DNA of 64,000 nucleotides from Paraphysomonas bandaiensis. Lineage: Eukaryota > Protista > Chrysophyceae. The notes beneath the pieces were generated by a model that was not told where the DNA came from, ran no database searches, and saw only the letters and a program-made list of their open reading frames with translations. Position 1 is the stretch's first letter. Each line of letters starts with the position of its first letter. The stretch covers positions 186,001 through 250,000 of the forward strand of contig CBFFRP010000377.1 of assembly GCA_965644295.1 (NCBI GenBank), read 5' to 3'. This document shows positions 2,429 through 54,073 of this stretch, piece by piece. A program made the position numbers and the translations under genes.

Positions 2429-2634
2429 TGTATGTATGTATGTATGTATGTATGTATGTATGTATGTATGTATGTATGTATGTATGTATGTATGTATGTA
2501 TGTATGTATGTATGTATGTATGTATGTATGTATGTATGTATGTATGTATGTATGTATGTATGTATGTATGTATGTATGTATGTATGTATGTATGTATGTA
2601 TGTATGTATGTATGTATGTATGTATGTATGTATG
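2399..2634. repeat. (TATG)~59 microsatellite, left flank of Copia-1
   Basis: Perfect tetranucleotide array read directly from the sequence. Confidence 0.99.
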
Positions 2635-2921
2635 CGCAGAGAAAAATACGGTACTCGGTCGAATGTTACGGATGTTACAAATCAATAAACGGACGGAATA
2701 CCCCCGTTGCTTTCACACAGTCTACACTACAGGTAGTCAAAGCAAGGTTCTCTTTATAGTTACTACAGAACTTCTCAGTAAGAGGAAATTATGCCTCTAT
2801 TCTACAGCCGTACACTACACACTGCATAATATAACACCATACACCTCTATGTGCCCTATGCATATCTTATACAGTCACTTCAAGTACTAAACTGAAAAGA
2901 ACATCCTCTCATTCCTCTACG
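2635..2921 (-). repeat. 3' LTR of Copia-1
   Basis: Direct repeat of 7336-7622. Element-strand ends are CGTAGAG...CTCTGCG. Confidence 0.97.
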
Positions 2922-2937
2922 CACCCCTGTGATGTGT

Positions 2938-5900
2938 CTACTCGTTCCCAACGATCAGACATATCAAATGACGAAACAATTTGCCTTGTAGGGGTTTAGT
3001 CAGCACATCAGCCAACATCTCTCCTGTAGGTAAGTACTGAAGCTTCACGTCTCCCCTATCATGGTGTTCTTCGACTAAAGCCTGCCTTACTCGTAGATAC
3101 TTCGATCGGTATTTGCCTCCTCCTTTCGTTACGAGACTGAGATTCGACAAGTTGTCCTGATAAATAACAGGTGGGTCAAGCGCATAGCCCTGCCCACACA
3201 CAAACTCATGTAATCTCATTGCATTAGACATCATATCAGATAGGCCGACCAGCTCGGATTCGGTCGAGTCTTTCGTCACGATTCGTTGCTTAGTTGATCG
3301 GCATAGTACTGTGGCCCCTCCAAGCTGTACAACTACGCCTGTATGCCCTTTTCCGTCTTCGTGGGTGGCGAACGAAGCGTCGATGAAGCTTCTTACCCGC
3401 AGCTGCTCTCCAATCTTCAGCTGCAGATCTTGATCCCTTGTGTGCGCAAGGTATTTCAGCACTCGATTCAACTTCTGCTGATCTCCGATAGTCGGACCCT
3501 TCACTCTTGTTGTGAGGTACGCTATACTGAGCAGGATGTCTGGTCTAACTCTTATTGACAGATATAGCAATTTGGCCACCACTGAATGGAAATTGGCAGC
3601 CTCCTTCCTCCCCAATTTCTGTCCTGCGCCCTCTGTGAACAGTGATGATGTCGCTGGAGATGCTGCTCTGCCAGTGACCGCTGCCTCCTCCAGCACTCCG
3701 TCTAGGTAAGCCCTCATTGACACCACTGCCCTGTCATCTATCATGCTCACATGCATACCTAAATACGACATGTCTTTGTCATCACAGTATTTTACCTCAC
3801 CATATTGTTTCTTTAGTTGTTCCACCAACCACTCGGTGTCACGCTTGTCTTGTGATAGCACTAGCAGATCGTCCACGTGTAGTGTTATAGTGCACTGCTT
3901 GCCGTTGACAGTCCTATTGAGAACACACTGATCCACCGGGTTAGCCACGAAACCAATGCTCTCCAGGTAAGCTCTTATCGTGTTGTACCAGAGCTTGGCG
4001 CTCTGCACGCATCCATATAACGCTTTGTCTAGGCGCACCAATATTTTGCCTCTTTCATCAACATACGGCTGGATTGTGGGGTCTAGTTTTCTGAGTATTG
4101 TGGCCAACATCGGCTCCAATTCCATTATTACCTCTTCGCCTGACATCTCCGCATTGAGGTATGCACCACCTATATCAATTGTCGATACATGTCTCCCCTC
4201 TCTCGCTGCTATTGCTAGGCATGCAAATACTGACTGTATGTCCACAGTGGGTGACGACGTGTCTGGGTACAGTTTCCGATCCTGCTGTGCCCCGTTCGCA
4301 ACCAGCCTCGCCTTGATTTTCTCGAACCTTCCGAGTCCGTCGTATTTCGTCTTCAAAAACATCAGCGATCGAATTGTTCGTTTGAGTTGAGTCTTTGATA
4401 GGTCACTCCGGTGTACTGGAACTATCGCCTTTTTTTCATGCAGCAGCTGCTTCAGCTCCCGTACTATCGCCAGGTAGGCTTCTTTGCCGTGTTCCTTTAA
4501 GCCTTTGGTTACGCTTGTATGATAGGCTCGATACATTACGGGCTTTCTTCTTGTGCCTGCCGCTATCCTTGCTCCGGCTGATGATGATGATGATAGTAGT
4601 TCGCTTGTGTTATGTGTCATCCCTGCAGTTTCCACCCCTGTAAATTCCGGATCGTCGATGTCGTTGGGTGTTGCAGCGCCCGGCTCCTGTTCGCTCGGCC
4701 CATCAGCCCGGTCGCCATCATCGTCGACTGGTTCCGTGATTTTTGTTCTCTCTCTCTCTTCTGTGTGGCCGTGCCCTTCGTCTGTGTCAACTGCTGTCAT
4801 CTGCCCCTCCTCGTGAGGCTCCTTCGGCTTATCGATCTCGTCATTCTCAGCTGGTGGCGTGGTATCCTCGATCTCTCGACTCTCATTCTCGCTGGTCGTG
4901 ACAGGTGAGTGTGACTTGTTGTGCAATGACGATATTCTGTTCACGGCGTCTATTACTATTTGTGTGGTCACCATCTTCACCCAGTTGGTCCTACTCACAT
5001 ATTTATTTGTTTTAAGGTTTAAAAATATCCAACTCCCGTTTGCGTTGCCGGATGGATACAGCGCGATACATGGTTCTGTTCTGGCCTGCTCCGCGTTATT
5101 GCTCTTGACCTTCGGGTCATAACATTCTACGTAGTCCCCAAAAGCCAGTGACAGTTCCTTTTTATAATTGGGTTTCCGACCAGTCAATGCCACTCGCGGT
5201 GCTACAGTTGTGCCATTGGTGGATGGCCTCCTCAAGTTCATGCGGCTGTTGGCGTATCTCACCAGGTCTCTGACGTTGGCATCTGGTAGGTTCCATGGTA
5301 GCCCTGAATGTACACTGCGTATTGTCTCTTTGAGTCGCCTAATCTTCGCGTCGATCTTGTCCAGGTGATCTCCAGCCCCTGCCACGTCAATCTCCATCCC
5401 TGAGATTTTGCCTCTCAGGGCCTTGAATCCCGGCTGAGGGTCCAGGTAGGTAACTGTCGGTATGTACCCGTAGCTTCTTAACAGGTTTACTTGTTCCTGT
5501 AGGGCCAATCCCAACTGATCCGTTGTTTCGTTTTCGAGTGAAGTAACGATGGTTAGTCCCAATGGTTCCGCTAGTGTGAGCATGAACGATTGCTGTCTCA
5601 CACTGAAGATGTCTGTGTACAGCCTTTGCTCCTTCTGCTGTTCTGCCTTCAGTTCCGGATCCGCGTATTGCCGGCTGACTTTCTTATTCGTCTGCTTGCC
5701 TCTCACCGCTTCGAACGGTCTCCCATATATGTCAAAAGCTCTTCTGATATCACTCGGGGTAAGTCGCACCCCTGTAACGTTTCCGTCGCTCACTAGCTGC
5801 ACAGCATCTCTCTCCGAGTCGAAGCCCGAGTTTCGGATCAGGTCTCGTGCTTCTCGCGCTCTCGCGACTTCTACTTTCGAATATTGGGCTTCGCGCTCCG

Positions 5901-7323
5901 CTACAGTCGTTACGTTGACTTTGGCCGTCGCCCAGTCGCGCATGTCGGCCACATACATCTTGTTCTTTCGATAGAAAGTCAAATCACTGTCAGGTAAGTG
6001 GACAGTGAAAGACTCTCCCTGCCTATATGTCACTTCATATATGTCTTCTACGTCCGCCTGACATAGCACGCTTGCCCTTAGCTCATCTGCTGTCTTACAG
6101 GTGAAGAATTGGTCTAGCTCGCCTACATTCGGTAGTTCCAGTGCGTGTCCCGATAATCCCGCCACGGTGCATCCTTTGGACGCCGGTCTTACATTGTTCA
6201 GTAGTCTTGGGTGTACTACCGAGACATCCGCCTGGTTGTCGAGTAATACCTCGTACCATTGGAATGGCTCGCTTCCTGACGTGAAGGCGTTCAACATTGT
6301 TGTCGTGCAGTGCTTGTTTTCTGATTCTTGGCTACTGTCTGGGCATTCGTTCATTCTGTGGCCTGGCTCACCGCAGCCCCAACATATGAGCTGCCTTTTT
6401 TTCTGACCACGTTTGCTGTTGTGCGACTTCGTGTCGTTCCCTTGTTGCTGCTCTGGTGTATCATCGCTATCTGCTGATTTCTTGCCTTTGTCAGACTTCC
6501 ATTTGCTCACGAATGCGGATCCGCCGCCTGCTCTCGTTGCTCTCTTCGGCGTTAGATATTTTGATGCTTTAGTATATATTTCATTCACATGCGTAGGTGC
6601 TGTTTGCGTTCCCATTGTTAGATCGTTGAGATAGCTAGTTTTGAACTCGCCATATCTCGTGTCGTCCAGCCCTTCGAAGAAATCCATCGCGATGTCCTCT
6701 TCATTCATTTCCGCGTTGTTCATGTCTTTGTAGGCTTCTAATAGATGATCAAACCTCTCCTTATAAGTAACTATACTCTCATATGCTCCCTGTTTAGCGT
6801 CTTTGTACCTTTTCCTCGCTTCTGCTCGTACCACTGTACTTACGCTGGAGATAGTGGATACTTTGTGGGTTTGTTTGATAGCCAGCCATAGTAGTAGAGG
6901 ATCCTTAGTCCTGTTCATGAGCTCGTATTCATCTAATAGCTTGACTGCATCCATTGATTCGTGGCTCAGATGGTCTACCATGAATGAGTAGAATGCCGAT
7001 CTATCGTTCCGCATCTTGTCTATTAATCTCCCTCTGGTCTTGGTCTTGTCCTTCATCAGGTCGAGGTTAACTCCATAGGGGTCGTCTTCCAAATCAAAAT
7101 CCTCTGGGTTTATCGCATCGGGCTCATAATATTTGTCCAGCTCTACTAGGCGTGCAAGATCACCGTACTTTTGCATGCCCACCACTACAAGCCTCTGTTT
7201 GAATGTGGCGAAGTTCGAGTTGGCACCGTATCTTAAAGTCGGTACATGTTCTGGTCTATCGGTGCTCGGTTTCTTGCCGAATCTTGCAAATCTTGTTGGC
7301 TTGTCGTTCGTTGTCTTCTTCAT
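2938..7323 (-). CDS. Copia-1 gag-pol polyprotein, 1461 aa, uninterrupted
   Basis: Zn knuckle CWGCGEPGHRMNEC, protease LLDNQA, integrase YTD..YLD..HLDKIDAKIR, RT KARLVANG / DIGGAYLNA / LDKALYG / LHVDDLL, RNase H FIDASFA / STESE / YQDN / ADVLTKPL. Confidence 0.97.
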   Translation of the reverse strand: MKKTTNDKPTRFARFGKKPSTDRPEHVPTLRYGANSNFATFKQRLVVVGMQKYGDLARLVELDKYYEPDAINPEDFDLEDDPYGVNLDLMKDKTKTRGRLIDKMRNDRSAFYSFMVDHLSHESMDAVKLLDEYELMNRTKDPLLLWLAIKQTHKVSTISSVSTVVRAEARKRYKDAKQGAYESIVTYKERFDHLLEAYKDMNNAEMNEEDIAMDFFEGLDDTRYGEFKTSYLNDLTMGTQTAPTHVNEIYTKASKYLTPKRATRAGGGSAFVSKWKSDKGKKSADSDDTPEQQQGNDTKSHNSKRGQKKRQLICWGCGEPGHRMNECPDSSQESENKHCTTTMLNAFTSGSEPFQWYEVLLDNQADVSVVHPRLLNNVRPASKGCTVAGLSGHALELPNVGELDQFFTCKTADELRASVLCQADVEDIYEVTYRQGESFTVHLPDSDLTFYRKNKMYVADMRDWATAKVNVTTVAEREAQYSKVEVARAREARDLIRNSGFDSERDAVQLVSDGNVTGVRLTPSDIRRAFDIYGRPFEAVRGKQTNKKVSRQYADPELKAEQQKEQRLYTDIFSVRQQSFMLTLAEPLGLTIVTSLENETTDQLGLALQEQVNLLRSYGYIPTVTYLDPQPGFKALRGKISGMEIDVAGAGDHLDKIDAKIRRLKETIRSVHSGLPWNLPDANVRDLVRYANSRMNLRRPSTNGTTVAPRVALTGRKPNYKKELSLAFGDYVECYDPKVKSNNAEQARTEPCIALYPSGNANGSWIFLNLKTNKYVSRTNWVKMVTTQIVIDAVNRISSLHNKSHSPVTTSENESREIEDTTPPAENDEIDKPKEPHEEGQMTAVDTDEGHGHTEERERTKITEPVDDDGDRADGPSEQEPGAATPNDIDDPEFTGVETAGMTHNTSELLSSSSSAGARIAAGTRRKPVMYRAYHTSVTKGLKEHGKEAYLAIVRELKQLLHEKKAIVPVHRSDLSKTQLKRTIRSLMFLKTKYDGLGRFEKIKARLVANGAQQDRKLYPDTSSPTVDIQSVFACLAIAAREGRHVSTIDIGGAYLNAEMSGEEVIMELEPMLATILRKLDPTIQPYVDERGKILVRLDKALYGCVQSAKLWYNTIRAYLESIGFVANPVDQCVLNRTVNGKQCTITLHVDDLLVLSQDKRDTEWLVEQLKKQYGEVKYCDDKDMSYLGMHVSMIDDRAVVSMRAYLDGVLEEAAVTGRAASPATSSLFTEGAGQKLGRKEAANFHSVVAKLLYLSIRVRPDILLSIAYLTTRVKGPTIGDQQKLNRVLKYLAHTRDQDLQLKIGEQLRVRSFIDASFATHEDGKGHTGVVVQLGGATVLCRSTKQRIVTKDSTESELVGLSDMMSNAMRLHEFVCGQGYALDPPVIYQDNLSNLSLVTKGGGKYRSKYLRVRQALVEEHHDRGDVKLQYLPTGEMLADVLTKPLQGKLFRHLICLIVGNE

Positions 7324-7335
7324 AATTTCCTCTTA
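7321..7335 (-). promoter_or_regulatory. Putative self-priming primer-binding site of Copia-1 (TAAGAGGAAATTATG)
   Basis: Abuts the 5' LTR and lacks the TGG that would pair with tRNA CCA. It is the exact reverse complement of LTR positions 7480-7494. Its last 3 nt are the gag ATG. Confidence 0.75.
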
Positions 7336-7622
7336 CGCAGAGAAAAATACGGTACTCGGTCGAATGTTACGGATGTTGCAAATCAATAAACGGACGGAAT
7401 ACCCCCGTTGCTTTCACACAGTCTACACTACAGGTAGTCAAAGCAAGGTTCTCTTTATAGTTACTACAGAACTTCTCAGTAAGAGGAAATTATGCCTCTA
7501 TTCTACAGCCGTACACTACACACTGCATAATATAACACCATACACCTCTATGTGCCCTATGCATATCTTATACAGTCACTTCAAGTACTAAACTGAAAAG
7601 AACATCCTCTCATTCCTCTACG
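7336..7622 (-). repeat. 5' LTR of Copia-1
   Basis: Direct repeat of 2635-2921. Confidence 0.97.
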
Positions 7623-7623
7623 G

Positions 7624-7807
7624 TATGTATGTATGTATGTATGTATGTATGTATGTATGTATGTATGTATGTATGTATGTATGTATGTATGTATGTATGT
7701 ATGTATGTATGTATGTATGTATGTATGTATGTATGTATGTATGTATGTATGTATGTATGTATGTATGTATGTATGTATGTATGTATGTATGTATGTATGT
7801 ATGTATG
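7624..7807. repeat. (TATG)~46 microsatellite, right flank of Copia-1
   Basis: Perfect tetranucleotide array. Confidence 0.99.
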
Positions 7808-17511: not shown

Positions 17512-20500
17512 TATTAGAATATGGATCTTATTCTAGTATATTCAGTATGTCACTTCAAGACAATGTACGAGAATACAGTGAAATATAGTGATGTACAAAT
17601 GCTGTGATGATGTTGAGAAACTGAAATAGTTTGATCGTTCAAGATATGTTCAGTAACGAGAGGTTCGCATATGTAGGATATTATGCAGGGATTATAATGA
17701 GTTAGTGTTGGTTATCACAACTTCGTGTAAACGATATTAATAAATCTATCTAGTCTTACGACAAATTCTCTCTGTGATCTAGTGTAAAATGAGCGTTTCT
17801 CAATATGGTAGCGAGCGAGGAGGAGAGAAGGAGGATAGAGGAGTAGTGCCACAGTTTAATGAGAGCAATGTTGAACAATGGATTGAAGACTTCGAAACGT
17901 TCCTCATGAGGAAAGAGCAAAGTGAAGTAGCGGTGGAGCCACCACCGAAGGAAAGCGACTTTGGGGAACAGCCACTCACGTTAATGGAGGAGAAGTCTTA
18001 CAGACAGGCTGTGAAGAAGTACTGGAAGGCGAATGCCATAGCGTATTCGTACTGCAGAGAGGCAGTGCAAACATCTTCGAAGGCGCTTCAGAAATTCCAT
18101 CTTCTACATAAAGGGTTCAAGGCTGATGGAAAAGGAAGCAACAGGTTTAAGGCGCATATTATGATTGATGAGTTGAAGAAGTGCTTTGCTGGAGGGAAGC
18201 AAAACAAGATCAGTGAGCTGTTGACTCAGTATGGATCTTTCCGTATGCGTCCGGAGGAGACTGCGAAGGACTATATAATACGGTTTGAAATACTGCTGAA
18301 AGAGCTACAGGAGCAGCAGCAGGACATATCGGAGCTCTCAAAAATAACACGGTTACGAGAAGGTCTGTTGAATGAAGAATATGCTCCTCTGAATGTTGCT
18401 TTGTATTTGATGCCTGATGATGTTGATTATGCAACATTATCAAGGAAGATAGAAAGGTATGATGATACCATTCCTGGAAGGATTGCGTTAGAGCGGAAAC
18501 GCAAGAAGGTGGAGGAGCTGAATTTCATTGAAAAGAGCAAACGGTCTCGAACAGAACGGGATAAGCGTAAGAAGGGCAACTGTAGATATTGCAGGAAAGA
18601 AGGAATTCCTCATAGCCATTCAACTGAACAGTGCAGGAGGAAGCAGAGGAAGAAGGATGGAGAGATATCAGGGCAGCGTCCTGGAAGTGCTGAGTATACG
18701 GGATGCAGAAATTGCAAGTCTCTGGAACATCTTGCTGCTGATTGTCCAACGACGAAGAAAAAGCATTCTAGAAGAGGAGAGAAAGGGAAGAATCATGGTA
18801 GGAAGCCGGACAAAAGGCTGCTGACAGTAGAGAATATACGGCGTGGAGAACCAGCAGAATTCTCTGATGAAGATGAAGCAAATATGATCGAGGATGTTAT
18901 GAAATTGTCATGCAATATACATGAAACGAATATATGTAGTGTAAATGATGACATGCATTATACATATATTGACACCTGCTGTTCATCATCAATGTTCTTG
19001 ATGAATGATGTGACCATGCTTGACACTCATATGAATACATCAAAGGTGATAAACGGCTCTAAGAAGGGATCAGAGATTCATATCACAAGTGTGGGTTCCC
19101 GTGGAGCATGGAGAGACATAGAAATTTCAGATCAGATCAATCGATGCCTGTGCTCCGGACGTAAGCTGAATGAAATGGGATATCGATTCACGGTGTGGTA
19201 TGGGATCCAAATTTATGACTGTAATACTGGTGAACTGGTACTGGAGGGACCCATGAAGAATGGAATGACTGCAGTTCCAACTCAGCAGCTGTTGGAGCTT
19301 CCAGATGTGTCTACACCGAGTAATTGTGAAGTAAATCTTAGCGATAGGACTGGTGAGGACGAGCTGGAGTTGCTGCATCGGAGAGCGGGTCACTTCAACA
19401 AACATGCTTTAGTGGAGGCACATAAGAGGATGCTCATCATGGGTACAGGGTTGAAACGAAAACACCACACAGCCAAGGTACACAAAAATCAGTGTTTGTG
19501 TGATGTGTGTGCCAGGTCTAAGATAACCCGAGTCAGCTTCCGAACGAAGGACGAGAATTCCGTTAAACCGAATTTTTCAGCAGATATCGCTGTGTACTTA
19601 AATTGTCCTGCTAGAGGTGGTGAGAGGTATGTGTTAAAGATAACGCATCATGCCAGCAAAATGTTCTGGGCGACGGGTTTAGTCCACAGAACTGGGGAAG
19701 CGGTCTTAGAAGTCTTCAAAGAGCTATTTAGAGGAGATGTTAAAAGGTACAAGCTCAAGATGGAGCACTATCATGCAGATGGTGCAGGAGAGTTAATCAG
19801 TGAAGAGCTGCGTCAGTATCTTAGGACACAGGAGTGCTATCAACATACGTGGAGCTCAACAGACTCTCCAGAAATGAATGCCATAGAGGAGAGGAAGTTC
19901 AGAACTGCTGGAGAGATGACTCTTGCAATGTTAATCCAATCTGGACTGCCACCGCAATTTTGGCTGGATGCATACATGGCAGCCAGATATATTTTGATTC
20001 GATTGCCAACGAAAACAGATAAAGGGTATATGTCTCCTATAGAGTTTCTAACGGGCGAGCCTCCAAATTTGAGATATCTTAGGGTATGGGGGTGTCGAAC
20101 TTATGTTCTTTCACCGAAGGCGGATCGACGAAAGGATTGGGAGGATAAGGCTCTAGTTGGATATTTAATGGGTTACTCTGATGAGAAGGTAGGATACCAT
20201 GTATATCTTCCTGAATCAAACAAGGTGGTGACTACAGTCCATATATTGACTGATGAGTCAACGCCATCACGATCAGAAAAGTATTTCGCAGAGATTGATG
20301 CTCTTCGAGTGCGGGAGGCCGCTAGACCCAAGCTTGCATCCGACTATGTCAGCTTAGAAGGAACGTATCATATTGATGATGAGGACGGACTTCTGTATAA
20401 GACAACAAGAGTTGTAGAACGTAAGGGTGTGATTGTAGCATACCGTTCACTTGTTACTGCAGGTCGCGAGCATATAGAGCACCGGGTGCCTATACACGTC

Positions 20501-23023
20501 GAAGACGTGGTGCGTATGACTGCAGAAACCCCCGGGAATACCGGGTACATAGGAAAGGGGGACGCCCTGAGTACTACGCCAGCCAGGGAGCTGGACCAGG
20601 GAAGACCTGGAGGGTTCCAGGAGAGTCCTGACCCAACCTGTCAACAGACAGTCGTGAGGTTGCAGACCTTGACAGACCGTGGGTCTGGGGATGCGAGCGG
20701 GGCTCCTCCCACACCGCAAGATTTGCGGGCTCAGGATGAGCAAGGTATGGGTTCGTATATATCTACTAGACGACCTATTGAACTAGATGGTGATGGTCGT
20801 GTACGGCGGAAACGGCTACAGCGTAGGTTGGCGAACGCATCGGTGTTAGGAGAAATAAATATGGTTGAGGTGCCAGATGCATGCACTGTTAACTTTAAAT
20901 ATGCAGAGTTTCAACATGATGACTTTAAGATACCAGACTCCTATGCTGAAGCGGAGAGATCTCCACAGTACATGAAGTGGCGAGAAGCTCGAAAGGTGGA
21001 GAAGACCTCACTACTGAAGAGACGTGTCTTAAAGATTGTGCGGACTCCACGGGGAGTGAAGTTGGTGCGAGCAAAGTATGTTCACACGGTGAAGAGAGAC
21101 CTTCTGGGGAATGTAGTCAAGTATAAGGCGCGGCTGGTTGCATTAGGGAATCTACAAGAAAAAACGGAGGAGGAGCAGTCCACGTTTGCTCCAGTGGTCA
21201 AAGGAATAACCATTCGACTGGTCCTCGCGATTGCGTTTATGTTCCATATATGCATGTACATCAGTTGGATGTATCATCAGCGTTTTGTTATGCCGATCTT
21301 GAAGAGGATGTTTATATGGCACCTCCACCTGATGAAGAGTTGCCAGCGGGGTGGTGTTTTCAATTGATCAAGGCCTTATATGGTTTGCGGTCATCACCGA
21401 GGCAGTGGAACAAGCATATTGACAAGTTTATCAAATCGTTACATTTTACTGCTTGCATTTTAGATACATGCTTGTATATGCGATGGAGTAATGGTCAATT
21501 GCACTTATTGCTGATATATGTTGATGATATTATCATTGCATCTGCTGATCTCACCTACTTAGAAAGTGTTAAACGTAGGTTCTGCGAAACGTTTGAAATG
21601 CACGATCTGGGTGTGTGCAAACGGTTTCTGAATATCAGAATCACGAGAGGAGAGGACTGGTACATGTTAGATCAATCGGAATATGCCAAGAATATTGTAA
21701 AGAAATTCGATTCGTTTATGGGGAAGAGCAGTAAGAATAAGGAGACTCCACTACCTACCAATGTTCAGGATTTGTTGGCAGAGCAACGTGAGCTGACGGA
21801 GGAGCAGAAGCAGTGGGTCGAATCATTTCCGTATAGAGGAATTATTGGAGCGGTGTTGCATTTGGCGATTCACACTAGACCTGATCTGGCTTACGCTGTG
21901 GGGTTATTGGCTCGATTTAGTACTTCTCCAACATATGCGACTTGCAGATTAGCTATTCATTTGTTGAAATATTTACGTGGTACAGTTGATAAGGGAATCA
22001 GATTCAGTGGGAGTGAGTTTGATTTACATGTATTCAGTGATTCAGACTGGGCTGGTGATAGGATGACTAGGCGGTCCACAACGGGATACATCGTGCTTTT
22101 ATGTGCGGGCGCTTTGGCCTGGCAGTCCAAGCTTCAGACCACAGTTGCGACTTCGAGCATGGAATCTGAGTATATGGCGGAGTATGCGGCTTTGCAAGAA
22201 CTGGTGTGGCTTCGGGGGGTGTTCAAGGAGCTCGGACTCTTGGTAGCGAAGCCGACTCCATTCTTTATGGATAGTAAGAGTGCAAAGGATCTTTCAGAGA
22301 ATCCAGTGTATCATAAGAGGTCGAAGCATATTGACATCAAGTATCACTGGATAAGAGAACATGTTAATGGCAAATTTCCTACAGCAAAGTTGATTCATGT
22401 ATCTACGGATGATATGGCGGCCGATATTTTTACAAAGGCGTTGTCCACGAAGATCTTCAGCCGTCATGAGAAAACGATTACCGGGGTTAAGAGGAGTGTG
22501 TCTAACAGTGTGGAGGAGCAGCAGAAGAAACGACCCCGAAGAGGTTAAAGGTGTGTTTTAGTGGGTGAAAATCCTACATAACTGTATATCTAGTTGACTG
22601 CTAGATATATATGTATCTTTAAAAGATTTCACATCTGTTTTTACCTATATGGGACTAGATAGTCATAGCATTATCAGATTATTGTGATCACTGTTGTTTT
22701 ATCTCACTGCATTCTACATTGAGTGGGAGTATTAGAATATGGATCTTATTCTAGTATATTCAGTATGTCACTTCAAGACAATGTACGAGAATACAGTGAA
22801 ATATAGTGATGTACAAATGCTGTGATGATGTTGAGAAACTGAAATAGTTTGATCGTTCAAGATATGTTCAGTAACGAGAGGTTCGCATATGTAGGATATT
22901 ATGCAGGGATTATAATGAGTTAGTGTTGGTTATCACAACTTCGTGTAAACGATATTAATAAATCTATCTAGTCTTACGACAAATTCTCTCTGTGATCTAG
23001 TGTAAAATGAGCGTTTCTCAATA
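17512..23023 (+). mobile_element. Copia-2: Ty1/Copia LTR retrotransposon with TA..TA LTR ends
   Basis: 294-bp LTRs at 17512-17805 and 22730-23023 with no difference noticed. TSD ATGTT at 17507-17511 and 23024-23028. PBS TGGTAGCGAGC. PPT GAGTGGGAG. Confidence 0.97.
17789..22548 (+). pseudogene. Copia-2 gag-pol with a 2-bp frameshift in RT (~21246-21251)
   Basis: Two Zn knuckles, protease YIDTCC, HHCC, IN SAD/HAD/EER, RT YVDD, RNase H SDSDWA. The extra AT in CATATATGCAT splits AIAFMFH|MHVHQLDVSSAF. Confidence 0.88.
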
Positions 23024-26139: not shown

Positions 26140-29100
26140 ATGGCGTCTACTGATCACCTTTCTGTGCGCTCATATCAGCTAGAGATACTTAACGCTGCTC
26201 TACAGGGTAATACGCTCGCTTTCCTCCCCACAGGTAGACCTGTATGCCTGTCGCTGTATGTGCTGCACATGTGTCCACTTTTGATAACTGATATTCACTA
26301 GGAGCTGGCAAGACATTAATATCTGTGTTGTTGATAAAGCACCACATCGAGATAGTCCGCAAGCGTGTGTTAGAGGGACAGCCAAAGAAATGTATTGCCT
26401 TTCTCGCGCCAACTAAAGTATTAGTAGCACAACAGTTCAGATATATTACAGGAAACTGTGATGCTGTGGTACGCTCGTACACTGGTGACACTACATCAGA
26501 GGGTGACGTACTTGTAGACAAATGGTGTGCGCATACTTGGACCAGCGAACTTAGAGCAGTTGACGTAATGGTAATGACCTCTGAAATATTGCGAAATATA
26601 TTGGAAAGAAAGTTTTTATCAGTAACAGACTTTGAACTTATAGTTCTGGTATATTATTTTCTCATCTCTTTAATTCATCTAAGATGGGCAACCGCAGGAT
26701 GAATGCCACCACGCTAATGGAAGTAGTCCAATGGCAGTGGTATGTGACATCGTTAGAGAAACTGTGGAAACCAAACCTCGAATTTTTGGTATGACGGCGT
26801 CGCCACTGCAGTGTAAAAAGGGTAATATATATTGGAAGATCCATGCCTTGGAACAAACAACTGGATGTCGTCTGGTGGCTCCAATGGAAACTGATGAACT
26901 GAGAAAGTATGCGCCTCGTCCTCGATTCTCCATTCTCGTCCACCCGCGGTCATTATGGGCTGACAAGGACTTCAAAATCTATCCGTGGCAAGAGAAACAG
27001 TACGTAGACCCAGTCGCCGCACCTACACTCTGTTTACAGCATTGTTACTTGCGGACAAGACACGGGGCCTGGATTGAGGAAATTAGGGTACTACTGCACA
27101 CACTGCAAGAAAGAGCGGGAAATGTACCACAACTGGCGGGGATTCGATTACTACTTGAGAAGACCAAAAATAAACATCTATCAGCCTGTATATTGGGTGA
27201 CATGCAACAGTTAATAGGGCAAATAATAAAAGTAGTAGAAGATGGTGGGGTGTTATGCGGGCTACATGCGCTTGTGGTCGCTCTAGGATCATCTGAAAAA
27301 GAAGAGAGTCTGCGGTGGAGACAGGACAATGCATCTGAAGAAAAAAAGTACAGTCGAAGGTCGCAAAGGAGTAACAATATGGCACCGAGGACTACGACAT
27401 ATATTGACTGGGATCGGTTTCAGAACATGGCCAATGATATCCTTGCTGGCCCATTTTCCGTACGACAAGAACACAGTGTGCTGTGCGATACTTCCGCTCT
27501 GATGTTATTCTCTCTCCTTGATGTATTTGCCTCACTAGCGCTCAGTATGGGACCACATAGATGCAGGGCGGCTGCTTCTCGATTGTCCAAATCGAATGAC
27601 GGGGGATGGCATTCCGTTGTGACGAGGATTCTTGAAAACTCTGTAGAGTCTGGGTCTGGGTCACCTTCTCTGCTTACATTTACTGTTGGCTCTCTAGGAG
27701 TCGTGAGCTCACCCCTGTTGTCACCTTTTGATTTCGAGAGTCTTGTAAAGAGTGGGTTTGCAGAAATGTCAAATAAAATTGGAGAAGCAGCACACACCCT
27801 TCTTGTCGCCATGACAGTCCATGACTTGATTTGTACGACGTTGTCTATAGATGGCGGAAATGAAAGTATTTTGGACTACAATCTTCAATTACCTCCCGAG
27901 TCTTATCAATCCATTAACTTGGCGACGGCGAGGTCTCTACAGTTGCCTTCATCGCAAAGTTTTTGTGAGTTGCAGGCGTTTACCAAGCTAGAAGGACCTC
28001 ATCTTATTACGCCCAAGGTCAGTACGTGCTTCAGAGATATAGTTTCTCGTGGCGAAAGTCGCTTAGTTCGAGATCTAGTGAAAATTAGCGTGGGCAATGA
28101 TACGGATAGGAATTCTATGTACAATGACTCAAGCGGTGGTATAAATGGAAATCGTGCCCACAATGTTGACTATGATGAATGGGCTGCAATAGTTTTTTGT
28201 CGTATGAGATTATCTGCGGTGACGCTCAGTAATCTGCTCCAGCGCACTTTAGATGCTGTGAAGCAGTGTGTGATAGAAAACGAAAACCAGGAATGTAGTC
28301 CAAATGTATACTCATCTTTAATTAGGCCTGGTCATATTATTGGTGGATGTCATGCGAAATATCTAAACAACCGTTTATGGGAATTCAAAACAGGTTTATT
28401 CAACGTTCTGTTTGCAACGGATATGGCGGAAGAAGGGCTAGATATGCGTTCTTGCCAAAGAATTATTAATTTTGATCCACCATCGACTGTGAAGAGCTAT
28501 GTCCAACGGCGTGGGCGAGCTCGAGCAAGTAATTCTGTCATGATTACGCTCGTGTCGGATGACGAGGACGGTATAAAAGTTATGGATGGCACACAAGATA
28601 TTATCTTCCAGGAAGCTGAGATGGATAACTATGATATCAACCATAGACAACCCGAGAATATGAGGCCGGGAGAGAGCTGTGTAACTGGTGTGGAACTCCG
28701 GTCCCAATATGAACTGTGTGACACCCAATATGTTGTCGAACACTCTGGTGCTCGTGCTGATGTCAATAATTCGACGCAACTGCTATTTCAATATTGTCAG
28801 CAAATACCTCATGACAAATATTTTTTCCCGGATCCTATCTTTTGGATAGCGACACAAAAGGCGTATCAATTTGATAGTGATGAGGCTGTCTGCGAACCTA
28901 CTTCCATGACAGTATATCGCTGCTCTGTTCTGCTGCCTAATAGTGTGCCCGCTGGAATACGGTGCGCTATCGGTCCACCCGCTCGAACGAAGTCGCTTGC
29001 AAAGAGTCTTGTTTCACTTATTTGTCTCCGCAATCTTCATAGATATGGCGAGCTAGATCACTGGCTATTAGCATCAAATTCGTTTACATCTGCGCATCGT

Positions 29101-31770
29101 CGACAAACCAATTGCGATATTGCCGAGAGCGGTGAGAAAAGTTCTAGTACTAGCGGTAACGGGCGAAGCGGTAATGTTCCCAAGAAATATATTGAAAATA
29201 ATCCTGATACTATTACCACTGTGAATATTAAAATGGTTCCTGATTGCGTCACCCCTAAAAATTCCGGGGCGAGTTTGCCGAAATTGTTGTACATGTATCG
29301 TTTTATCGCCAAGTGTGATAACTGTGTTCATGAGTCATATATCAATAGCTGTGCATTATGTTCAAGGCATTTGCATGCAATGAATGCTTTTGGTGTTGCA
29401 TTTTTACGAGAGCTTCCTTCTGAGGTAGCGGCAGAGACCATGAACTTATATGTACGAGGGGTACAAGTGAATATATCACTAGTTTCTCTTGGTAGCAAAG
29501 TAGTTACTTTACCTGAGTTGGATGCAATGCAGCGATTTCACAGAGCTGTACTATGCTGGGAGGTTGATGAGAATGAGTCCGATACGAAGTCTTCGTTGGA
29601 GTCTATCATAGGAAGCCGTTGGTGTTCAAATAGCAATAAAGCATGGTACATGTTGTTTCCAGTGGGAGAAAAATTAATCAATATGGCAAGTAATGCATCT
29701 AGTTCTTCAGAATATGTCCAATCAACAGACAGTACCATTCCTGGCTGGTCGAGACTCGCAGAATATTCGATATCAGCAGAAACGCTTACCAAAAATTTAG
29801 TACGTCACCACGAGAGGATTTGTGAAACTGAGTGTAGTGGTGATCATCCACGCAAGGGCTCACCTGAGGAATATCTAGCGGGTGATGCAGTGTGTTATGA
29901 GTCCCTGACCAATGTTTTGTTCAGTCGTGGTTACAACAGAATCTACATCGGTATAAATGACCCACATGAGCTGAAATCACTGTGTGATGTAATGAAATCA
30001 ACGACAGCTGGTTCTAAATGCATGCCGGTGACTTTCAAAGAACACTACCTTTCAAAGAACAGGATTTCTCCTTCTGAGGTTGCTAGGATAGAAAGTGATC
30101 CATCGCATCGACTCGTACATGCGGCATCAGTGTCTGGTCGTCTCTCGCTTGTTCAAGTTTTAGATAAAGTGGTCACTGAAAATATTATTGACCAAGAGCA
30201 TTCGCATGTTTCAATTCAACATCTCTTGCCGGAACAGTGTGTAGTTCTTGGTGACGCTCTATGGTTTTTGGTCGGACAAGTAGCCCCGTCTATGATGTGG
30301 AGAGTCATGTCGTTGTTGCTGGCATTAGAGGCAAGGGATCACATTATGGCAACCCTGCCACTGCCGGTACCGTTGCACATCATTCAGTCAGCGGTCGATA
30401 TGGATTATCCCAAGGAATCTACTTGTGCATGTGAGAACTATAGAAACGTAAGGCTTCCATCACCTAAGCTTGTACTTGAAGCTCTTACTCCTAGAATGAC
30501 CAAAGAGGTTCTAGACAGCGAAAGATTGGAATTTTTTGGTGATTGCATCTTAAAATATATATCTACTTGGGCTGTATATAATATATTTCCGGGGAAGCAC
30601 GAGGGCCATCTCACTAGAGCGAGAATGAAAATTATATCCAATGAGTATCTGACAATGTGTGCTAGAGCTTCCGGTATGGTCCAGTATATGCGCGCTCATG
30701 CCTTGTCAAATGGAAAGCAGGAACTCCGCTTTTGTCCACCTGGGCGGTGTCAAAGCTTTAGGAATACGAAATCGGTTTGGAATCTTGATATAACCAAACC
30801 TCGAGATAGTGTTAAAGAACAGAGTAAGGGGGATACCGATGAATTCATGTTGTCACAGCACGCTCCCGTTGATGTCAAGGCTAAAAAGATAGCTGATGTT
30901 ATGGAGGCCCTTTTGGGCTGTTTTTACGAAGCAGGAGGTGAAAACTTGACCGTTGCTCTTATCCGCGCCTTTGGCTTATGGCCTCAGACGAATATATATA
31001 CCAGGGAGGATACAATTACCGATTGTGTCACCTCCGTTTGCAGCAATCGTGACGAGGAGCTTGTTATCCCTGAGGGGTATCCCGAGCAGCTGGAGCGCAT
31101 AGCGCGAGGCTCCATCGAACAGTCAAAGTTTCCCCCTGCAAACACGCCATATTCTAATATGGCTACGAGGAGAAGTTATCTATGTGCTACAGCTATCGAC
31201 ATCATTCACTCAAAAATTGGATATAGGTTTACAAACTTTTCTTTAATGGACCAGGCACTCACTCACTGCTCCGTTCTCCATAAGGCCTCCAACCAGCGCC
31301 TTGAGTTTTTAGGGGACGCAATTCTGGATTTCGCAGTTGTTTGTGTACTTTACTCATCTCTCCCCAGGGCGTCACAGGGACAGCTTTCTAGTATCAAGAG
31401 CAAGTTGCTATGCAATCGCAATTTAGCCTTGATTGGTCTCGATATCGATCTCTATCAAAGTATGACAGTGATGTCATCAGCCTTAATTCAACAGTTTGGT
31501 GATATGCAGGAGTGGAAGTTACGTAAAGCCGATGTCGTTGCGAATGAAAACCATGAATACGAAAAACTTAGAGATAAATTTGCATGTATGGGCGGCGGGA
31601 AGGTGCTCGCTGATGCTATGGAAGCACTTGTAGGGGCAGTCTTTATTGACAGTCAGTGCTCCATTCAAGCTGTTCGTGATGTTGTGAAGCACACGAAGAT
31701 AATTCCTGAATCATTTTTTACCGATCCGTACTCTATTCTAGACCCTACCAGCAGTAATACAACTAACTAA
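26140..31770 (+). CDS. DCL: Dicer (helicase-DUF283-divergent PAZ-RNase IIIa/IIIb), 3 exons
   Basis: Motifs RSYQLE, LPTG|AGKT, DECHH, GMTASP, AEEGLD, YVQRRGRAR, LLFQYCQQIPHDKYF, HLLPEQC, ERLEFFGD...IADVMEALLG, QRLEFLGD...LADAMEALVGA. Confidence 0.95.
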
Positions 31771-34164
31771 GTGGTCGATTCACTGACAGGGCAGGTCGAT
31801 CATGGCGTTGCAGATGACGTATTGTTAGAAGACATTTTGTTTAGAGGTATTCTTTCCTTTTAATGTAAATGTGTAAGTAAAGTAGTGATATTTTCGCACC
31901 TTTCGGCATTACTCACTTGTTAAGTTTTTCTATACAGTAGTGCAATATGAAAAACGATCTCGATTTATGATTACTTATACGGGATACTGAGTATAAAAGT
32001 GAGGGAGCTCGTAATGCAAGATATATATTAACCACGTTTCCATTTTATGTATATATAAGAGATTACGTATTATTAGTCACCATCAAGTTGGTCAATCCCA
32101 CATGTTGAGTGTCGCTTAAAGGCTGCAGTTTAAGGTTTCTGGCTTATAGCTGCTGATGAAAAATACAGTAGATAGTAGTTAAATGCCGTAAAATATGAAT
32201 TGAATACAATTTCACATATTAATCACATAACCTCTTGTGAACATCAGTTCTCGTGTGTTGACCAACCCCACATTCATATATATCTCTTGTATAAACATAT
32301 ACATTAAATTTTCCTTTCACTACCTACTGGTGCACACTATAAATTGATTCACTTCAATTGCACAATACATATCATGTCATACGTTAGCAGAGCCAGATAA
32401 GAATATATTGGATTGCAATAATATAATATTGCAATATAAATATATAACAATTATTTATTTTTTCTTGCCACAATAGCATATTTATCATTATTACTGTACT
32501 TTTTAGCATAATTTGGCTTTGCAATATATATTTATATATATCATATATAATATTGTTCATGCTAGTGTGTGTCTTTGAAAATATATTTGATTTATTATAA
32601 ATTACTCTTCATAATCACATAACTTGTCCATTATTTTATAACATACATCGTACAATTCTGTTAATTATTAATTACCAGCAACGAAGAACACTATTTATAC
32701 ATCATGTTCGATATTAGAGTTCATAAACTCTCTCTGTCAACAAGCTATTCACCAAAATATTGTAAACTTCAAACTGTTAAAAGTGTGCTACCTACCTCAT
32801 ACAACTAAAGACTGATAAATTAAATTTTTCTTATGATCATGTATGTTGTGTAAAAACTGTCAATAAATGGAAGATTGCATATATCCACCCATTTCGGTCA
32901 AAAAACCAAAAAATAATCATTCGATTTCAAATTATTCGATCGTCTTGTCTTTCATATTTACTGCACATAAGTTGTCGGAATTACTTCCTCGAAGCAAAAA
33001 GCTAGAAGAAGTTTTCTCTTTCTTGACAGCTTATGGTTCCTACATTGCATATATATCGTCAATGTAGGGTGTTATGAATATGCTCGTTAGCTATGAAGTA
33101 TGTATTTTCCAAGTACTGTAGTTTCCAGTACAAACATTGTGCATCGTTTGTTCAGCAGAGCCAAGATTATCATGACACACTTGCGACAAGAAATAACCCC
33201 ACGACGCCTCGAACTGCTGCTGTTCCTTTGCTTCAACAAGCACTTGTGAACAGCAGTGCAACAGGTCATCGATGATATACTGTCCTATTTTATCATGACG
33301 AGAACGAGGACAACTATGGCAAAGCAAAGAGTTGGAATACAGAATACTTAGAGTACTAGTCGCTAGTTGCTGCATTGTTATTGGGTTTTCATCATAATAT
33401 TTAATCCACTCTAGTATTGAGTTGGATACTACCGATCGAGCAACTGTTTTCTTCTTAGCGCCCAAAATATATTAATATATGCTTAGGCTATAGACTATTG
33501 GATTTTATATGTAAAATGGGATTTTACTTAGAAAAAAGCTATAGTATTATAGGAATAATAGTAGCTTGATTAGACGTTATTGTATACTTAAGTTTTATTT
33601 ATTCATACATATATGTTACGTTAGTTATAATAATATTATTCACAATTAGAAAATTCAAAGAACCAATATTATTCCAGTACTCAGTGACAAGAAGCATTCA
33701 ATTATATGATATTATATATAAAAGTAGATAACAACAATATAATAAGTTATATTATATTCAATTAAAAATATAATATATCTTATTATATATACACAATGTC
33801 AGAACTTACTACCTCTCCTGGTTCTTGCTGCAAATCTTTCCACCAATGCTTTTCTGCGAAAGGAGTTTACCTCAGTCTGCATCTTCTGTAATTCCTCCAT
33901 ATTTGAAGAGAGCTCCAACATGTTTTCGACTTCACCTCTATCGAGAAACTGGTATCGTACATGGAAGGACAGTGCTTATTAGCAATGTTTCGTGGTCCCG
34001 TATTGGCCATACCTCCTCTCGAAAGAGACATATCAACGGTATGTCGTGATGGGCTACGCGATCGGTGCCTTGATGATGAACGATCACGCGGCAATGAATT
34101 ATAAGAGCTTTCCCTGTGAAACGAAGTTCTGTCCCCTCGAACGGGGCCGATATCTCACTAATGA

Positions 34165-34674
34165 CGGACTCGCACCTTGTCTTGGTGTTCTGGGGATACG
34201 TACCGGAGATATTTCTCCAGGAAACTAACGTGAGCCGCATATATCATATATATATATAGCATATAGTCGGCAGATATTGTTCTGTCCACTCATAGCAAAC
34301 TACTTGTGTGGTATACAAGAGACACTAAGAAGAGGTGTCGCTTGTGTAGACGTCTTTGGGCCTTGACAAATAACGAATATGCAGGCATCCGGGAATGAGC
34401 CCACCTCTAGGGCATCCGGGGCATTGGACTGCCTGTTGAAGTCAAGAACCCGGGCTGTTCACCTTAAGGACCCAGAAGTCTTGAAGACAACAGATGTCAG
34501 GTATATCAACATTCCACTTGCTCACTGCATTTGCTTTGAGTAATAGAGCGAGCAAAACGGGTTGCTCCTTGGTGCTTGCGGTTACAGCAGGTTTCGTAGC
34601 GTTAAATAGTAGGATATCAGCGTTAAGCACTGACTCTTAAACGCCTATTGCTAATAATAAGACATTCACTACTA
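34165..34674 (+). mobile_element. Family-X non-coding element copy (terminus slightly truncated)
   Basis: Near-identical to 37670-38161 (CGGACTCGCACC...GACATTCACTACTA). Confidence 0.9.
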
Positions 34675-37657: not shown

Positions 37658-38161
37658 CCCTCAACAACGTCGGACTCGCACCTTGTCGTGGTGTTCTGGG
37701 GATAAGTACCGGAGATATTTCTCCAGGAAACTAACGTGAGCCGCATATATCATATATATATATAGCATATAGTCGGCAGATATTGTTCTGTCCACTCATA
37801 GCAAACTACTTGTGTGGTATACAAGAGACACTAAGAAGAGGTGTCGCTTGTGTAGACGTCTTTGGGCCTTGACGAATATGCAGGCATCCGGGAATGAGCC
37901 CACCTCTAGGGCATCCGGGAATGAGTCAAGCACCCGGGCTGTTCACCTTAAGGACCCAGAAGTCTTGAAGACAACAGATGTCAGGTATATCAACATTCCA
38001 CTTGCTCACTGCATTTGCTTTGAGTAATAGAGCGAGCAAAACGGGTTGCTCCTTGGTGCTTGCGATTACGCACAAGCAGGTTTCGTAGCGTTAAATAGTA
38101 GGATATCAGCGTTAAGCACTGACTCTTAAACGCCTATTGCTAATAATAAGACATTCACTAC
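37658..38161 (+). mobile_element. Family-X non-coding element, full-length copy
   Basis: Starts CCCTCAAC. 13-bp TSD TAACATTGTGTCA at 37645-37657 and 38162-38174. Confidence 0.92.
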
Positions 38162-53077: not shown

Positions 53078-53348
53078 TTAAAATAACAATAAGCAACTAT
53101 TCGATTAGGGATGAACTGGGTGCAGCCACCTCTCATGCAACTGGAAGCATATCACATGCAGCAAAATCTCATCATGATGTACAATCCAGCACTTCATGTA
53201 TCTACACAGAAATACATATGTATAGATGCGTACTTATATCAACACACCACACCATGTACAGTATTGGACAGCAAAAAATGTATGGTGCTGTGTAGGTACA
53301 TATGTATGTACAGAGTATGTATGTATATATGTATGTATGTATGTACAG

Positions 53349-53692
53349 TATGTATGTATGTATGTATGTATGTATGTATGTATGTATGTATGTATGTATG
53401 TATGTATGTATGTATGTATGTATGTATGTATGTATGTATGTATGTATGTATGTATGTATGTATGTATGTATGTATGTATGTATGTATGTATGTATGTATG
53501 TATGTATGTATGTATGTATGTATGTATGTATGTATGTATGTATGTATGTATGTATGTATGTATGTATGTATGTATGTATGTATGTATGTATGTATGTATG
53601 TATGTATGTATGTATGTATGTATGTATGTATGTATGTATGTATGTATGTATGTATGTATGTATGTATGTATATATGTATGTATGTATGTATG

Positions 53693-53758
<66 letters not shown>

Positions 53759-54056
53759 TGTATGTATGTATGTATGTATGTATGTATGTATGTATGTATG
53801 TATGTATGTATGTATGTATGTATGTATGTATGTATGTATGTATGTATGTATGTATGTATGTATGTATGTATGTATGTATGTATGTATGTATGTATGTATG
53901 TATGTATGTATGTATGTATGTATGTATGTATGTATGTATGTATGTATGTATGTATGTATGTATGTATGTATGTATGTATGTATGTATGTATGTATGTATG
54001 TATGTATGTATGTATGTATGTATGTATGTATGTATGTATGTATGTATGTATGTATG
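53349..54056. repeat. (TATG)n microsatellite, ~700 bp with three TATA interruptions
   Basis: Read directly from the sequence. Confidence 0.99.
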
Positions 54057-54073
54057 CACAGAGTATGTATGTA

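Follow-up and report, generated by a model that had tools for sequence, protein, structure and literature searches.

What primes minus-strand synthesis in a Copia element that lacks a tRNA site? Priming by a tRNA is usually taken as the rule for LTR retroelements, and two of the Copias in the window (the whole 64-kb stretch of DNA analysed here) follow it, with TGGTAGCG sites directly after their LTRs, as the initial annotation had stated. A third has no TGG at its site; what abuts its U5 is a stretch complementary to the RNA of its own LTR, a pattern that recurs across its clade and that probably places the element in the self-primed class.

An intact Copia-type element

The element is an intact, recently inserted Copia-type retrotransposon (Table 1). 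Its ORF is intact and its LTRs are identical at 286 of 287 positions (99.65%), differing only at c7378 versus t2677, both as first annotated, and a near-identical copy exists in nature, represented by a 99% identical protein on a Tara Oceans metagenome scaffold; these three observations point to recent activity. The insertion target is an (ACAT)n microsatellite. The 5-bp length of the target duplication is that of Ty1/Copia, in the window copy (CATAC) as in the relative L089 (TTGAA). TG...CA termini, usual but not universal in Ty1/Copia, are absent, with CG...CG in the window copy and L089, and the tRNA-type Copia at 17512-23023 likewise lacks TG/CA termini.

The reverse transcriptase is of the Ty1/Copia type (RVT_2, PF07727), and the order of the domains is Gag-PR-INT-RT-RH, with the zinc knuckle at residues 314-328, the modelled integrase within 345-800 and the reverse transcriptase from 984. 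Residues 345-800 have no Pfam or PDB sequence match, and no match to rve at the sequence level. An AlphaFold2 model of this region (pLDDT 86) retrieved the PFV, RSV, MVV and HIV integrases in Foldseek (best E 3e-11), a predicted fold that matches retroviral integrases and would put the integrase upstream of the reverse transcriptase. Membership of the Tf1/sushi clade (Ty3/gypsy chromoviruses) was rejected on the RVT_2 reverse transcriptase and this position of the integrase. A relative with 38% identity comes from a Chaetoceros transcriptome.

Table 1. Features of the self-complementary Copia-type element, in window coordinates.
Feature	Position	Strand	Description
Copia-type element	7622-2635	-	LTRs 7622-7336 and 2921-2635 flanking one intact ORF
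5' LTR	7336..7622	-	287 nt; termini CGTAGAG...CTCTGCG (without TG/CA); direct repeat D2
3' LTR	2635..2921	-	287 nt; direct repeat with 5' LTR
Target-site duplication CATAC, left copy	7623..7627	.	read from sequence
Target-site duplication CATAC, right copy	2630..2634	.	read from sequence
TATA-like TTATATTAT	7527..7535	-	33-41 nt upstream of arm; weak, only loosely conserved in relatives
LTR-internal arm CATAATTTCCTCTTAC, candidate self-primer	7479..7494	-	inverted repeat I5, fold, covariation, Inr statistics; CATA initiator-like motif at 5' edge
Same arm in 3' LTR	2778..2793	-	repeat finder and pattern search
AGAGAA, predicted partner UUCUCU at U5 end (7339-7344)	7449..7454	-	RNAalifold, four subfamily members
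Candidate primer binding site GTAAGAGGAAATTATG	7321..7336	-	first base is last LTR base; last three bases are gag start codon
gag-pol ORF, intact	2938..7323	-	1461 aa
CCHC zinc knuckle of Gag/NC	6340..6384	-	residues 314-328; Pfam PF00098, E 0.0034; PDB nucleocapsid matches
Protease-like and integrase region	4924..6291	-	residues 345-800; AlphaFold2 and Foldseek
Copia-type reverse transcriptase RVT_2	3667..4374	-	residues 984-1219; Pfam PF07727, E 1e-26
Polypurine-tract-like CACAGGGGTG	2922..2931	-	directly upstream of 3' LTR; kept in relatives

The site at the LTR edge and its arm

Directly after the 5' LTR the minus strand reads TAAGAGGAAATTATG (7335-7321). Reading of the sequence and a repeat finder agree with the initial annotation that this 15-mer is the exact reverse complement of LTR positions 7494-7480 and of 2793-2779 in the 3' LTR, and the pattern has exactly three occurrences in the 64 kb at zero mismatches. 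For a 15-mer that abuts the LTR directly and has a perfect match at any position of the 287-nt LTR, the chance expectation is ~3e-7. The one extra C:G pair that had been proposed is also present (C7479:G7336), and it uses the last base of the LTR. A feature absent from that annotation is that the ATG within the 15-mer (7323-7321) is the start codon of the 1461-aa ORF; the 12 nt between LTR and ATG are too few to hold a second primer site. In the window's two tRNA-type Copias the best self-repeats reach only 7 and 10 nt, neither of them significant, and tRNA and Rfam scans of the 64-kb window found no tRNA gene. The LTR of the Copia at 46114-51407 also matches the arm at 13/15 positions; this was set aside as chance (~0.3 expected), since that element is tRNA-primed and the match occupies another part of its LTR.

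In a predicted fold of the RNA from 7494 to 7300 the terminal stem forms, with an MFE of -53.3 kcal/mol and a z of -3.1. The further GAGAA/TTCTC extension of the duplex that was first described holds for the window copy and L002 but is missing in L003 and L004, and is thus not conserved. RNAalifold predicts an AGAGAA/UUCUCU helix of the Tf1-style U5-IR helper type from four subfamily members (n=4); it is invariant in the subfamily and hence carries no covariation signal.

Arm and site in relatives

The initial annotation had suggested asking whether the site and LTR 15-mers co-vary in related families, and they do. Relatives were drawn from marine and freshwater metagenomes, many of them short contigs on which the two LTRs are collapsed. 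With a shuffle p<=0.01 as the cut-off for an arm pair, a perfect Watson-Crick repeat of 11-17 nt lies at the same place in 27 of 56 evaluable loci, which represent 23 distinct arm pairs. The arms are almost wholly different in sequence between families and yet the pairing is perfect in each of the 23, so that a site matches its own arm at 11/11 positions versus a cross-family mean of 4.45/11. Four further loci (L030, L089, L090 and L051) fit by inspection, and the pattern is seen in long-read contigs as well as in short metagenome contigs. About half of the 56 evaluable loci are without a significant repeat; many of these have mis-set ORF starts or truncated LTRs, and for many the 'no repeat' label is unreliable, the start having been set at the first ATG of ORFs that were broken or extended too far. 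One locus, L007, was considered as tRNA-primed and dropped, its TGGTGGCG sitting in the zinc-knuckle coding sequence.

Closer to the window element, arm and site read CATAATTTTCTCTTA with TAAGAGAAAATTATG in L003 and CATAATTTTCTATCA with TGATAGAAAATTATG in L004, and three columns are fully compensated among four subfamily members; in L002 a single position towards the outer end of the duplex is mismatched. The flanks are kept while the arms vary: the 5' arm is followed by CTAACGAG, and a run of pyrimidines precedes the 3' arm. At the level of sequence comparison, these data show the pairing to be functional in this clade of relatives. The 3' end of the primer had been placed exactly at the LTR boundary, which needs a small correction: the 3' end of the LTR is defined in six elements, and in five of them (the window element, L004, L020, L089 and L090) the duplex extends 1 nt into the LTR, pairing its last base; in L030 it starts one base later.

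The 5' edge of the arm carries signals of its own. CA occurs there in 21 of 23 families versus a background of 0.146, and the diatom initiator-like TCAH(+1)W overlaps the edge in 16/23 versus 0.055, both counts ignoring shared ancestry. The window subfamily has CATA at this edge, which fits CAY(+1)A, also a diatom consensus (motif definitions from PMC4686930). The presence of an initiator-like motif supports a transcription start at or near the arm's 5' edge. The TATA-like TTATATTAT of the initial annotation is present as described, at 7535-7527, and is poorly conserved in relatives. Two other sources of promoter information were discarded: contig starts near the arm (L030, L034) and Logan contigs cannot be read as RNA 5' ends, since these are assembled DNA whose breaks fall in the LTR, and a promoter/terminator scan of the window used bacterial consensus sequences, irrelevant for a eukaryote.

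Probable priming by the element's own RNA

The use of its own RNA as primer, not a tRNA, as first proposed for this element, is strongly supported by the covariation in 23 families, the lack of a repeat in the two tRNA-type Copias and the initiator-like motif at the arm edge, and because of these findings Tf1-like self-priming is the best explanation of the site, and a likely one. Transcription would start at, or 1-2 nt from, the CA at 7494/7493. The first 15-16 nt of the RNA would then fold back onto the U5-abutting site (7336/7335-7321), to which their complementarity is plain, and the element's RNase H, by analogy with Tf1, would free the primer by nicking the RNA on the arm's 3' side. Reverse transcriptase would extend it through U5 and R to give strong-stop DNA. 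Plus-strand synthesis may subsequently copy the primer RNA and regenerate the binding site, which would always mirror the LTR arm; we propose that complementarity is perfect in every family despite the differing sequences because the site is recopied in this way. If polyadenylation occurs downstream of the arm, the 3'-LTR arm would lie in R at the 3' end of the RNA. The duplex would hide the gag AUG in the window copy and several relatives, and one may speculate that it serves as a switch between translation and reverse transcription.

The inverted repeat might instead be an RNA structure only, closing the 5' UTR and hiding the gag AUG for translation control, packaging or dimerisation, with some other primer used. 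The fold is indeed stable, the start codon lies within the duplex in five subfamilies, and covariation alone proves pairing, not priming. However, the 3' arm sits at the U5 edge with an offset of 0-1 nt in 6/6 elements with defined LTR ends, which is the position of a minus-strand primer, and in the window copy there are no other bases between LTR and ATG and no TGG-type site. Furthermore, in most families the AUG is 1-28 nt outside the duplex, which excludes its concealment as the function that is conserved. We consider this reading improbable. Less probable again is priming in trans, with a second packaged RNA providing the arm, or from the arm copy in the 3' R region. Retroelement RNAs are generally packaged as dimers and the 3' LTR contains the same 16-mer; the sequence is neutral on cis versus trans, but an arm that forms the 5' end of the RNA accounts more simply for the initiator motif at its 5' edge.

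Non-3'-end tRNA priming exists in Copia and Ty5, and the site could in principle bind a host tRNA, a tRNA fragment or another small RNA, the LTR match being secondary. The site, however, differs almost wholly between related families while always matching its own LTR, and conserved host tRNAs cannot track a site that changes between families along with the LTR. The absence of TGG, the AT-rich arm, which is unlike tRNA, and the use of TGGTAGCG by tRNA-primed Copias of the same genome also make this explanation very improbable. A match due to chance or to assembly is already refuted by the comparative sequence data, for although many relatives are on short metagenome contigs with collapsed LTRs, in the window copy two LTRs, flanking sequence and a target duplication are all present, and the pattern, with its minute chance expectation, is found again in 23 families of distinct sequence and on long-read contigs.

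Self-priming has been shown experimentally for Tf1 of S. pombe (Tf1/sushi group, Ty3/gypsy), in which the arm is 11 nt, and to our knowledge experiments have established it for no elements other than the Tf1-type gypsy group, while in Copia a prediction exists for a single plant lineage. The window element resembles Tf1/sushi elements in its U5-adjacent site complementary to its own LTR RNA, presumably the 5' end of the transcript, in lacking a tRNA site, and in that complementarity is conserved as a principle across relatives. It differs in superfamily, having an RVT_2 reverse transcriptase with the integrase upstream. In its clade the arm is 11-17 nt and the site often overlaps the gag AUG, and whereas Tf1 priming was shown by experiment, that of the window element is predicted from sequence.

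The initial annotation knew of no self-priming in Ty1/Copia, which the literature contradicts: in the TAR lineage of plant Ty1/copia it is predicted in 89% of 203 elements (Neumann et al. 2019, PMC6317226), and for Houba and Osr-1 of this lineage it had been proposed earlier (PMC6317226). By the criterion used there, the sequence beginning 0-5 bp downstream of the 5' LTR had, over 10 bp or more, a complement within the LTR, and the TAR target duplication is 5 bp (PMC6317226). The window element shares with TAR the superfamily, the diagnostic self-complementary site and the 5-bp duplication. TAR elements, however, come from green plants, whereas members of the window clade are found in metagenomes of marine and fresh waters and in the genome to which the window belongs, and the window element has an integrase and protease too divergent for Pfam and LTR termini of CG...CG. 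Self-priming in Copia is thus already known as a prediction, to which the window element adds a protist clade.

Hemivirus-type elements (Drosophila copia, Ty5), which use an internal or half initiator tRNA, are likewise of the Copia superfamily with a site not complementary to the 3' end of a tRNA, but their sites match a conserved tRNA-iMet segment, whereas those of the window clade vary by family and match only their own LTR. The fungal GalEa Copias have a 'Conserved Hairpin Site' in place of a PBS, a local palindromic hairpin for which no LTR complement was found (PMC5445492); they resemble the window element in being Copias that have no tRNA primer site and show a conserved structure where one is expected, but the partner of the window element's site is a distant LTR segment, not a local palindrome. 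The CoDi lineages, Copia-like elements of diatoms and marine metagenomes, some without TG/CA termini, are also similar, and the paper describing them (Maumus et al. 2009, PMC2806351) is silent on primer sites. Our literature searches found no report of self-priming in diatom or CoDi elements.

Self-priming as a solution probably marks a large, sequence-diverse Copia clade of marine and freshwater protists, in which the covariation is unusually clean, and it would widen the known range of tRNA-independent priming. A tentative extension, which we regard as possible but doubtful, is that self-priming is ancestral in a deep-branching aquatic-protist Copia clade and independent of Tf1/sushi and plant TAR, with the capped, initiator-set 5' end as primer, the site rewritten every cycle and the AUG-overlapping duplex acting as a switch in several families. 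LTR-annotation pipelines gain a concrete rule for elements otherwise reported without a primer site. Such elements are predicted to escape host control via tRNA fragments or tRNA availability. Active Copia elements of diatoms respond to stress, and in these hosts the shared position of site and gag start codon, together with the initiator motif, offers testable links among the onset of transcription, translation and reverse transcription.

Anatomy of W1 and its candidate primer-site region

W1, the minus-strand Copia element carrying the candidate self-priming site, retains an intact ORF between LTRs that differ by a single base over 287 nt, in agreement with the initial annotation. It is flanked by a 5-bp target duplication, CATAC, with the insertion point within an (ACAT)n microsatellite. 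Long microsatellites of this type occur at three places in the window, and the ORFs listed in two regions are probably repeat artefacts.

Coordinates of W1 and other features of the window
Feature	Position	Strand	Details
W1 5' LTR	7622-7336	-	287 nt
W1 3' LTR	2921-2635	-	287 nt
W1 ORF	7323-2938	-	single, intact, 1461 aa
W1 site	7335-7321	-	TAAGAGGAAATTATG
W1 arm	7494-7480; second copy 2793-2779	-	CATAATTTCCTCTTA
W1 helper helix (predicted)	7454-7449 / 7344-7339	-	AGAGAA / UUCUCU
W1 protease and integrase region	4924-6291	-	alignment A2
First tRNA-type Copia	17512-23023	+	294-nt LTRs, 100% identical; termini TA...TA; duplication ATGTT; primer site TGGTAGCGAGCG
Its ORFs	17789-21367, 21250-22548	+	overlapping
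Second tRNA-type Copia	46114-51407	-	293-nt LTRs, one difference; primer site TGGTAGCGAATGC
Its ORFs	48857-51130, 46533-48926	-	overlap ~70 nt
Dicer-like ORF	26731-31770	+	uninterrupted, 1679 aa
Direct repeats	34154-34585 / 37660-38069		97-99% identity, 3.5 kb apart
Direct repeats	45076-45322 / 59841-60087		97-99% identity, 14.8 kb apart
(ACAT)n-type microsatellites	2298-2634, 7623-7800, about 53164-54100
ORFs, probably repeat artefacts	53111-54179, around 2320-2890

In W1, Pfam detected a CCHC knuckle and a reverse transcriptase of Copia type (RVT_2, E 1e-26), but neither an integrase nor a protease, relaxed thresholds included, and a PDB sequence search with the family profile did not find these two domains. 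Modelled with AlphaFold2 on a 30-sequence alignment, residues 345-800 (pLDDT 86) matched the retroviral integrases of PFV, RSV, MVV and HIV in Foldseek, with E down to 3e-11. Together with RVT_2 and the knuckle, this integrase-like fold gives the domain order Gag-PR-INT-RT-RH, and W1 is thus a divergent Ty1/Copia element. Throughout the clade the protease and integrase region is unseen by Pfam and PDB sequence search, and the integrase is recognisable by predicted fold only (Foldseek: PFV, RSV and HIV integrases). The clade's protease-like motif is LLDNQAD, versus the usual D-S/T-G, and LYTD571, YLD628 and D658/E666 are putative catalytic residues read from the sequence. The W1 LTRs end in CG...CG, not TG...CA, termini shared with the 42%-identical relative L089 (2485-2957), which likewise has a clean 5-bp duplication, TTGAA. 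A polypurine-like tract, CACAGGGGTG, lies just ahead of the W1 3' LTR, and CACAGGG(G)T(C)G is kept at this position throughout the clade.

The sequence immediately 3' of the 5' LTR on the element strand, TAAGAGGAAATTATG (the site), is the exact reverse complement of CATAATTTCCTCTTA (the arm) inside the LTR, so sequence and repeat match both bear out the perfect complementarity first reported. A sixteenth pair forms between C7479 and G7336, the base at which the LTR ends. Because the site closes with the ATG that starts gag, the LTR and the coding region have nothing else between them. The terminal stem forms when RNA from 7494 to 7300 is folded, in the minimum-energy structure (-53.3 kcal/mol, z -3.1) as well as in the centroid.

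Complementarity among relatives and in the other window Copias

Hundreds of relatives from metagenomes (marine, freshwater and other), plus one from a Chaetoceros transcriptome, came up in a protein search with W1; the contigs of the closest were retrieved for arm and site comparison. L001, from a Tara Oceans sample, is 99% identical to W1 and carries an identical pair. In L002 (75% amino-acid identity) the arm is retained, and the site, TAAGAGGAAATTAGG, has one mismatch near the outer end; its ATG is shifted 8 nt downstream relative to the site, so conservation of the site is not merely due to coding. The pairs are CATAATTTTCTCTTA / TAAGAGAAAATTATG in L003 (68%) and CATAATTTTCTATCA / TGATAGAAAATTATG in L004 (60%). 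Across W1 and L002-L004, RNAalifold gave a 16-bp stem in which three columns carry changes in both pairing partners and one mismatch occurs. The predicted helper helix is invariant in this subfamily by RNAalifold, and the GAGAA/TTCTC extension of the pairing that had been proposed is not conserved among the four members. A pair unrelated to these, CATTTCGTTTTAC / GTAAAACGAAATG, occurs in L005 (48%), with the start codon at the site end as in W1.

Eighty further loci came from a family-alignment scan of JGI metagenome contigs and three from Logan assemblies. Wherever a locus had a usable 5' end, the ~60 nt upstream of the gag ATG were compared with the remaining non-coding sequence for their longest exact reverse-complement match, and 200 shuffles per locus set its significance. 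A perfect match of 11-17 nt (p<=0.01) was present in 27 of 56 loci, representing 23 distinct arm pairs. Several of the "negative" loci are false negatives with mis-set ORF starts or truncated LTRs; direct inspection found the pairing in L030, L089 and L090, and L051 had a 12-nt repeat in the first-pass search. The arms differ almost entirely in sequence from family to family (e.g. CTTTTAATTAAGAC, ACTTGATCCTAATAT, ATAATTTCCTGTAAGT, CACTAATCGATAATTAT and ATAATTTCTAATTTTAT), yet when anchored LTR-proximally every family's site matched its own arm at 11/11 positions, against a cross-family mean of 4.45/11. The flanks are conserved, with CTAACGAG or CTCAAAG 3' of the arm and a pyrimidine run 5' of the site, and a quick RT tree distributes the feature across the entire 78-row clade. 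Metagenome contigs of L033, L046 and L069 contain LTR-internal-LTR-internal-LTR arrays, which could be genuine tandem elements or assembly loops.

The two other Copias of the window do carry tRNA sites, TGGTAGCG directly after their LTRs, as initially annotated. The same repeat search gave best matches of just 7 and 10 nt in these elements, neither significant, and since they belong to the same genome they serve as internal controls. A 13/15 match to the W1 arm in the LTR of the second (46160, 51161) was judged to be chance. The ORF break of the first lies in or near RT; a frameshift mutation, programmed recoding or an intron could each account for it. The two direct-repeat pairs may represent segmental duplications or the LTRs of further elements. 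The Dicer-like ORF encodes a helicase C and a Dicer dimerisation domain plus a pair of RNase III domains; nearby genes are for an eIF4G-like protein, a P5A ATPase, a RhoGAP and a DEAD helicase. The window is a diatom-like eukaryotic region rather than human DNA, compatible with an intron-poor protist host, a diatom for example.

Site position, proposed transcription start and priming

The arm had been proposed to form the RNA 5' end, and the motif at its edge supports this placement, from which we infer the start site. A CA dinucleotide marks the 5' edge of the complementarity in 21/23 families (background 0.146) and TCAH(+1)W, a proposed diatom initiator-like motif, in 16/23 (background 0.055); these statistics ignore shared ancestry, but the pattern nonetheless recurs in sequence-unrelated arms. 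The CATA of the W1 subfamily fits CAY(+1)A, reported around P. tricornutum FCP gene starts (both motifs as cited in PMC4686930). The TATA-like box noted upstream of the arm is only loosely conserved among relatives.

Among the six elements whose 3' LTR has real flanking DNA, the duplex starts on the last LTR base in W1, L004, L020, L089 and L090, and on the first base past the LTR in L030. A minus-strand primer must anneal at exactly this edge. The one-base overlap may mean that RNase H cuts one base into the duplex or that the U5 end keeps one nucleotide of the primer. The gag AUG lies inside the duplex in W1, L003, L004, L005 and L015/L018 and 1-28 nt downstream of it in the remaining families, so a translation switch, possible where the duplex contains the AUG, is not the conserved role.

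Complementarity, position, covariation and initiator motif give strong comparative support to Tf1-like self-priming, the best-supported reading for the W1 clade. The RNA 5' end would fold back on the site adjoining U5, RNase H would release it as a primer, RT would elongate it into strong-stop DNA, and the site would be recopied from the primer in plus-strand synthesis. In retroelements the primer templates the plus-strand copy of the site, which therefore records the last cycle's primer; this model predicts a perfect match to the family's own arm in recently inserted copies, as observed. In L012, L024 and L080 the arm-to-site spacing is just 40-52 nt, so R plus U5 would be extremely short and the fold-back close to a 5'-terminal hairpin.

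A purely structural stem is improbable, since it would explain neither why the site keeps to the U5 edge nor why no other primer site is present. Still less probable is priming in trans or from the 3' copy of the arm, although the sequence itself fits these as well as it fits priming in cis. We give very little credence to a host tRNA or small RNA as primer, which could not follow sites that differ between sister families, and a chance match for the W1 pairing and an assembly artefact are excluded.

Relation to known and predicted self-priming elements

Self-priming is established for S. pombe Tf1 and by inference extends to the Tf1/sushi group. The initial view that it was unknown in Ty1/Copia is contradicted by its prediction for 89% of 203 elements of the plant TAR lineage, and by earlier proposals for Houba and Osr-1 cited in the same work (PMC6317226). 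Neumann et al. 2019 required complementarity of at least 10 bp between the LTR and sequence beginning 0-5 bp after it (PMC6317226), a criterion essentially identical to that used for the W1 clade. GalEa, a fungal Copia, differs in having a local hairpin with neither a primer site nor an LTR complement (PMC5445492). The description of diatom CoDi elements (PMC2806351) is silent on primer sites, and our literature search turned up no report of self-priming among Copia elements of diatoms or protists. The comparative sequence evidence strongly supports the W1 clade as a large protist Copia clade with Tf1/TAR-style self-priming, distinguished by arms of 11-17 nt, LTRs ending in CG...CG, a highly divergent integrase and, in some families, overlap with the AUG.
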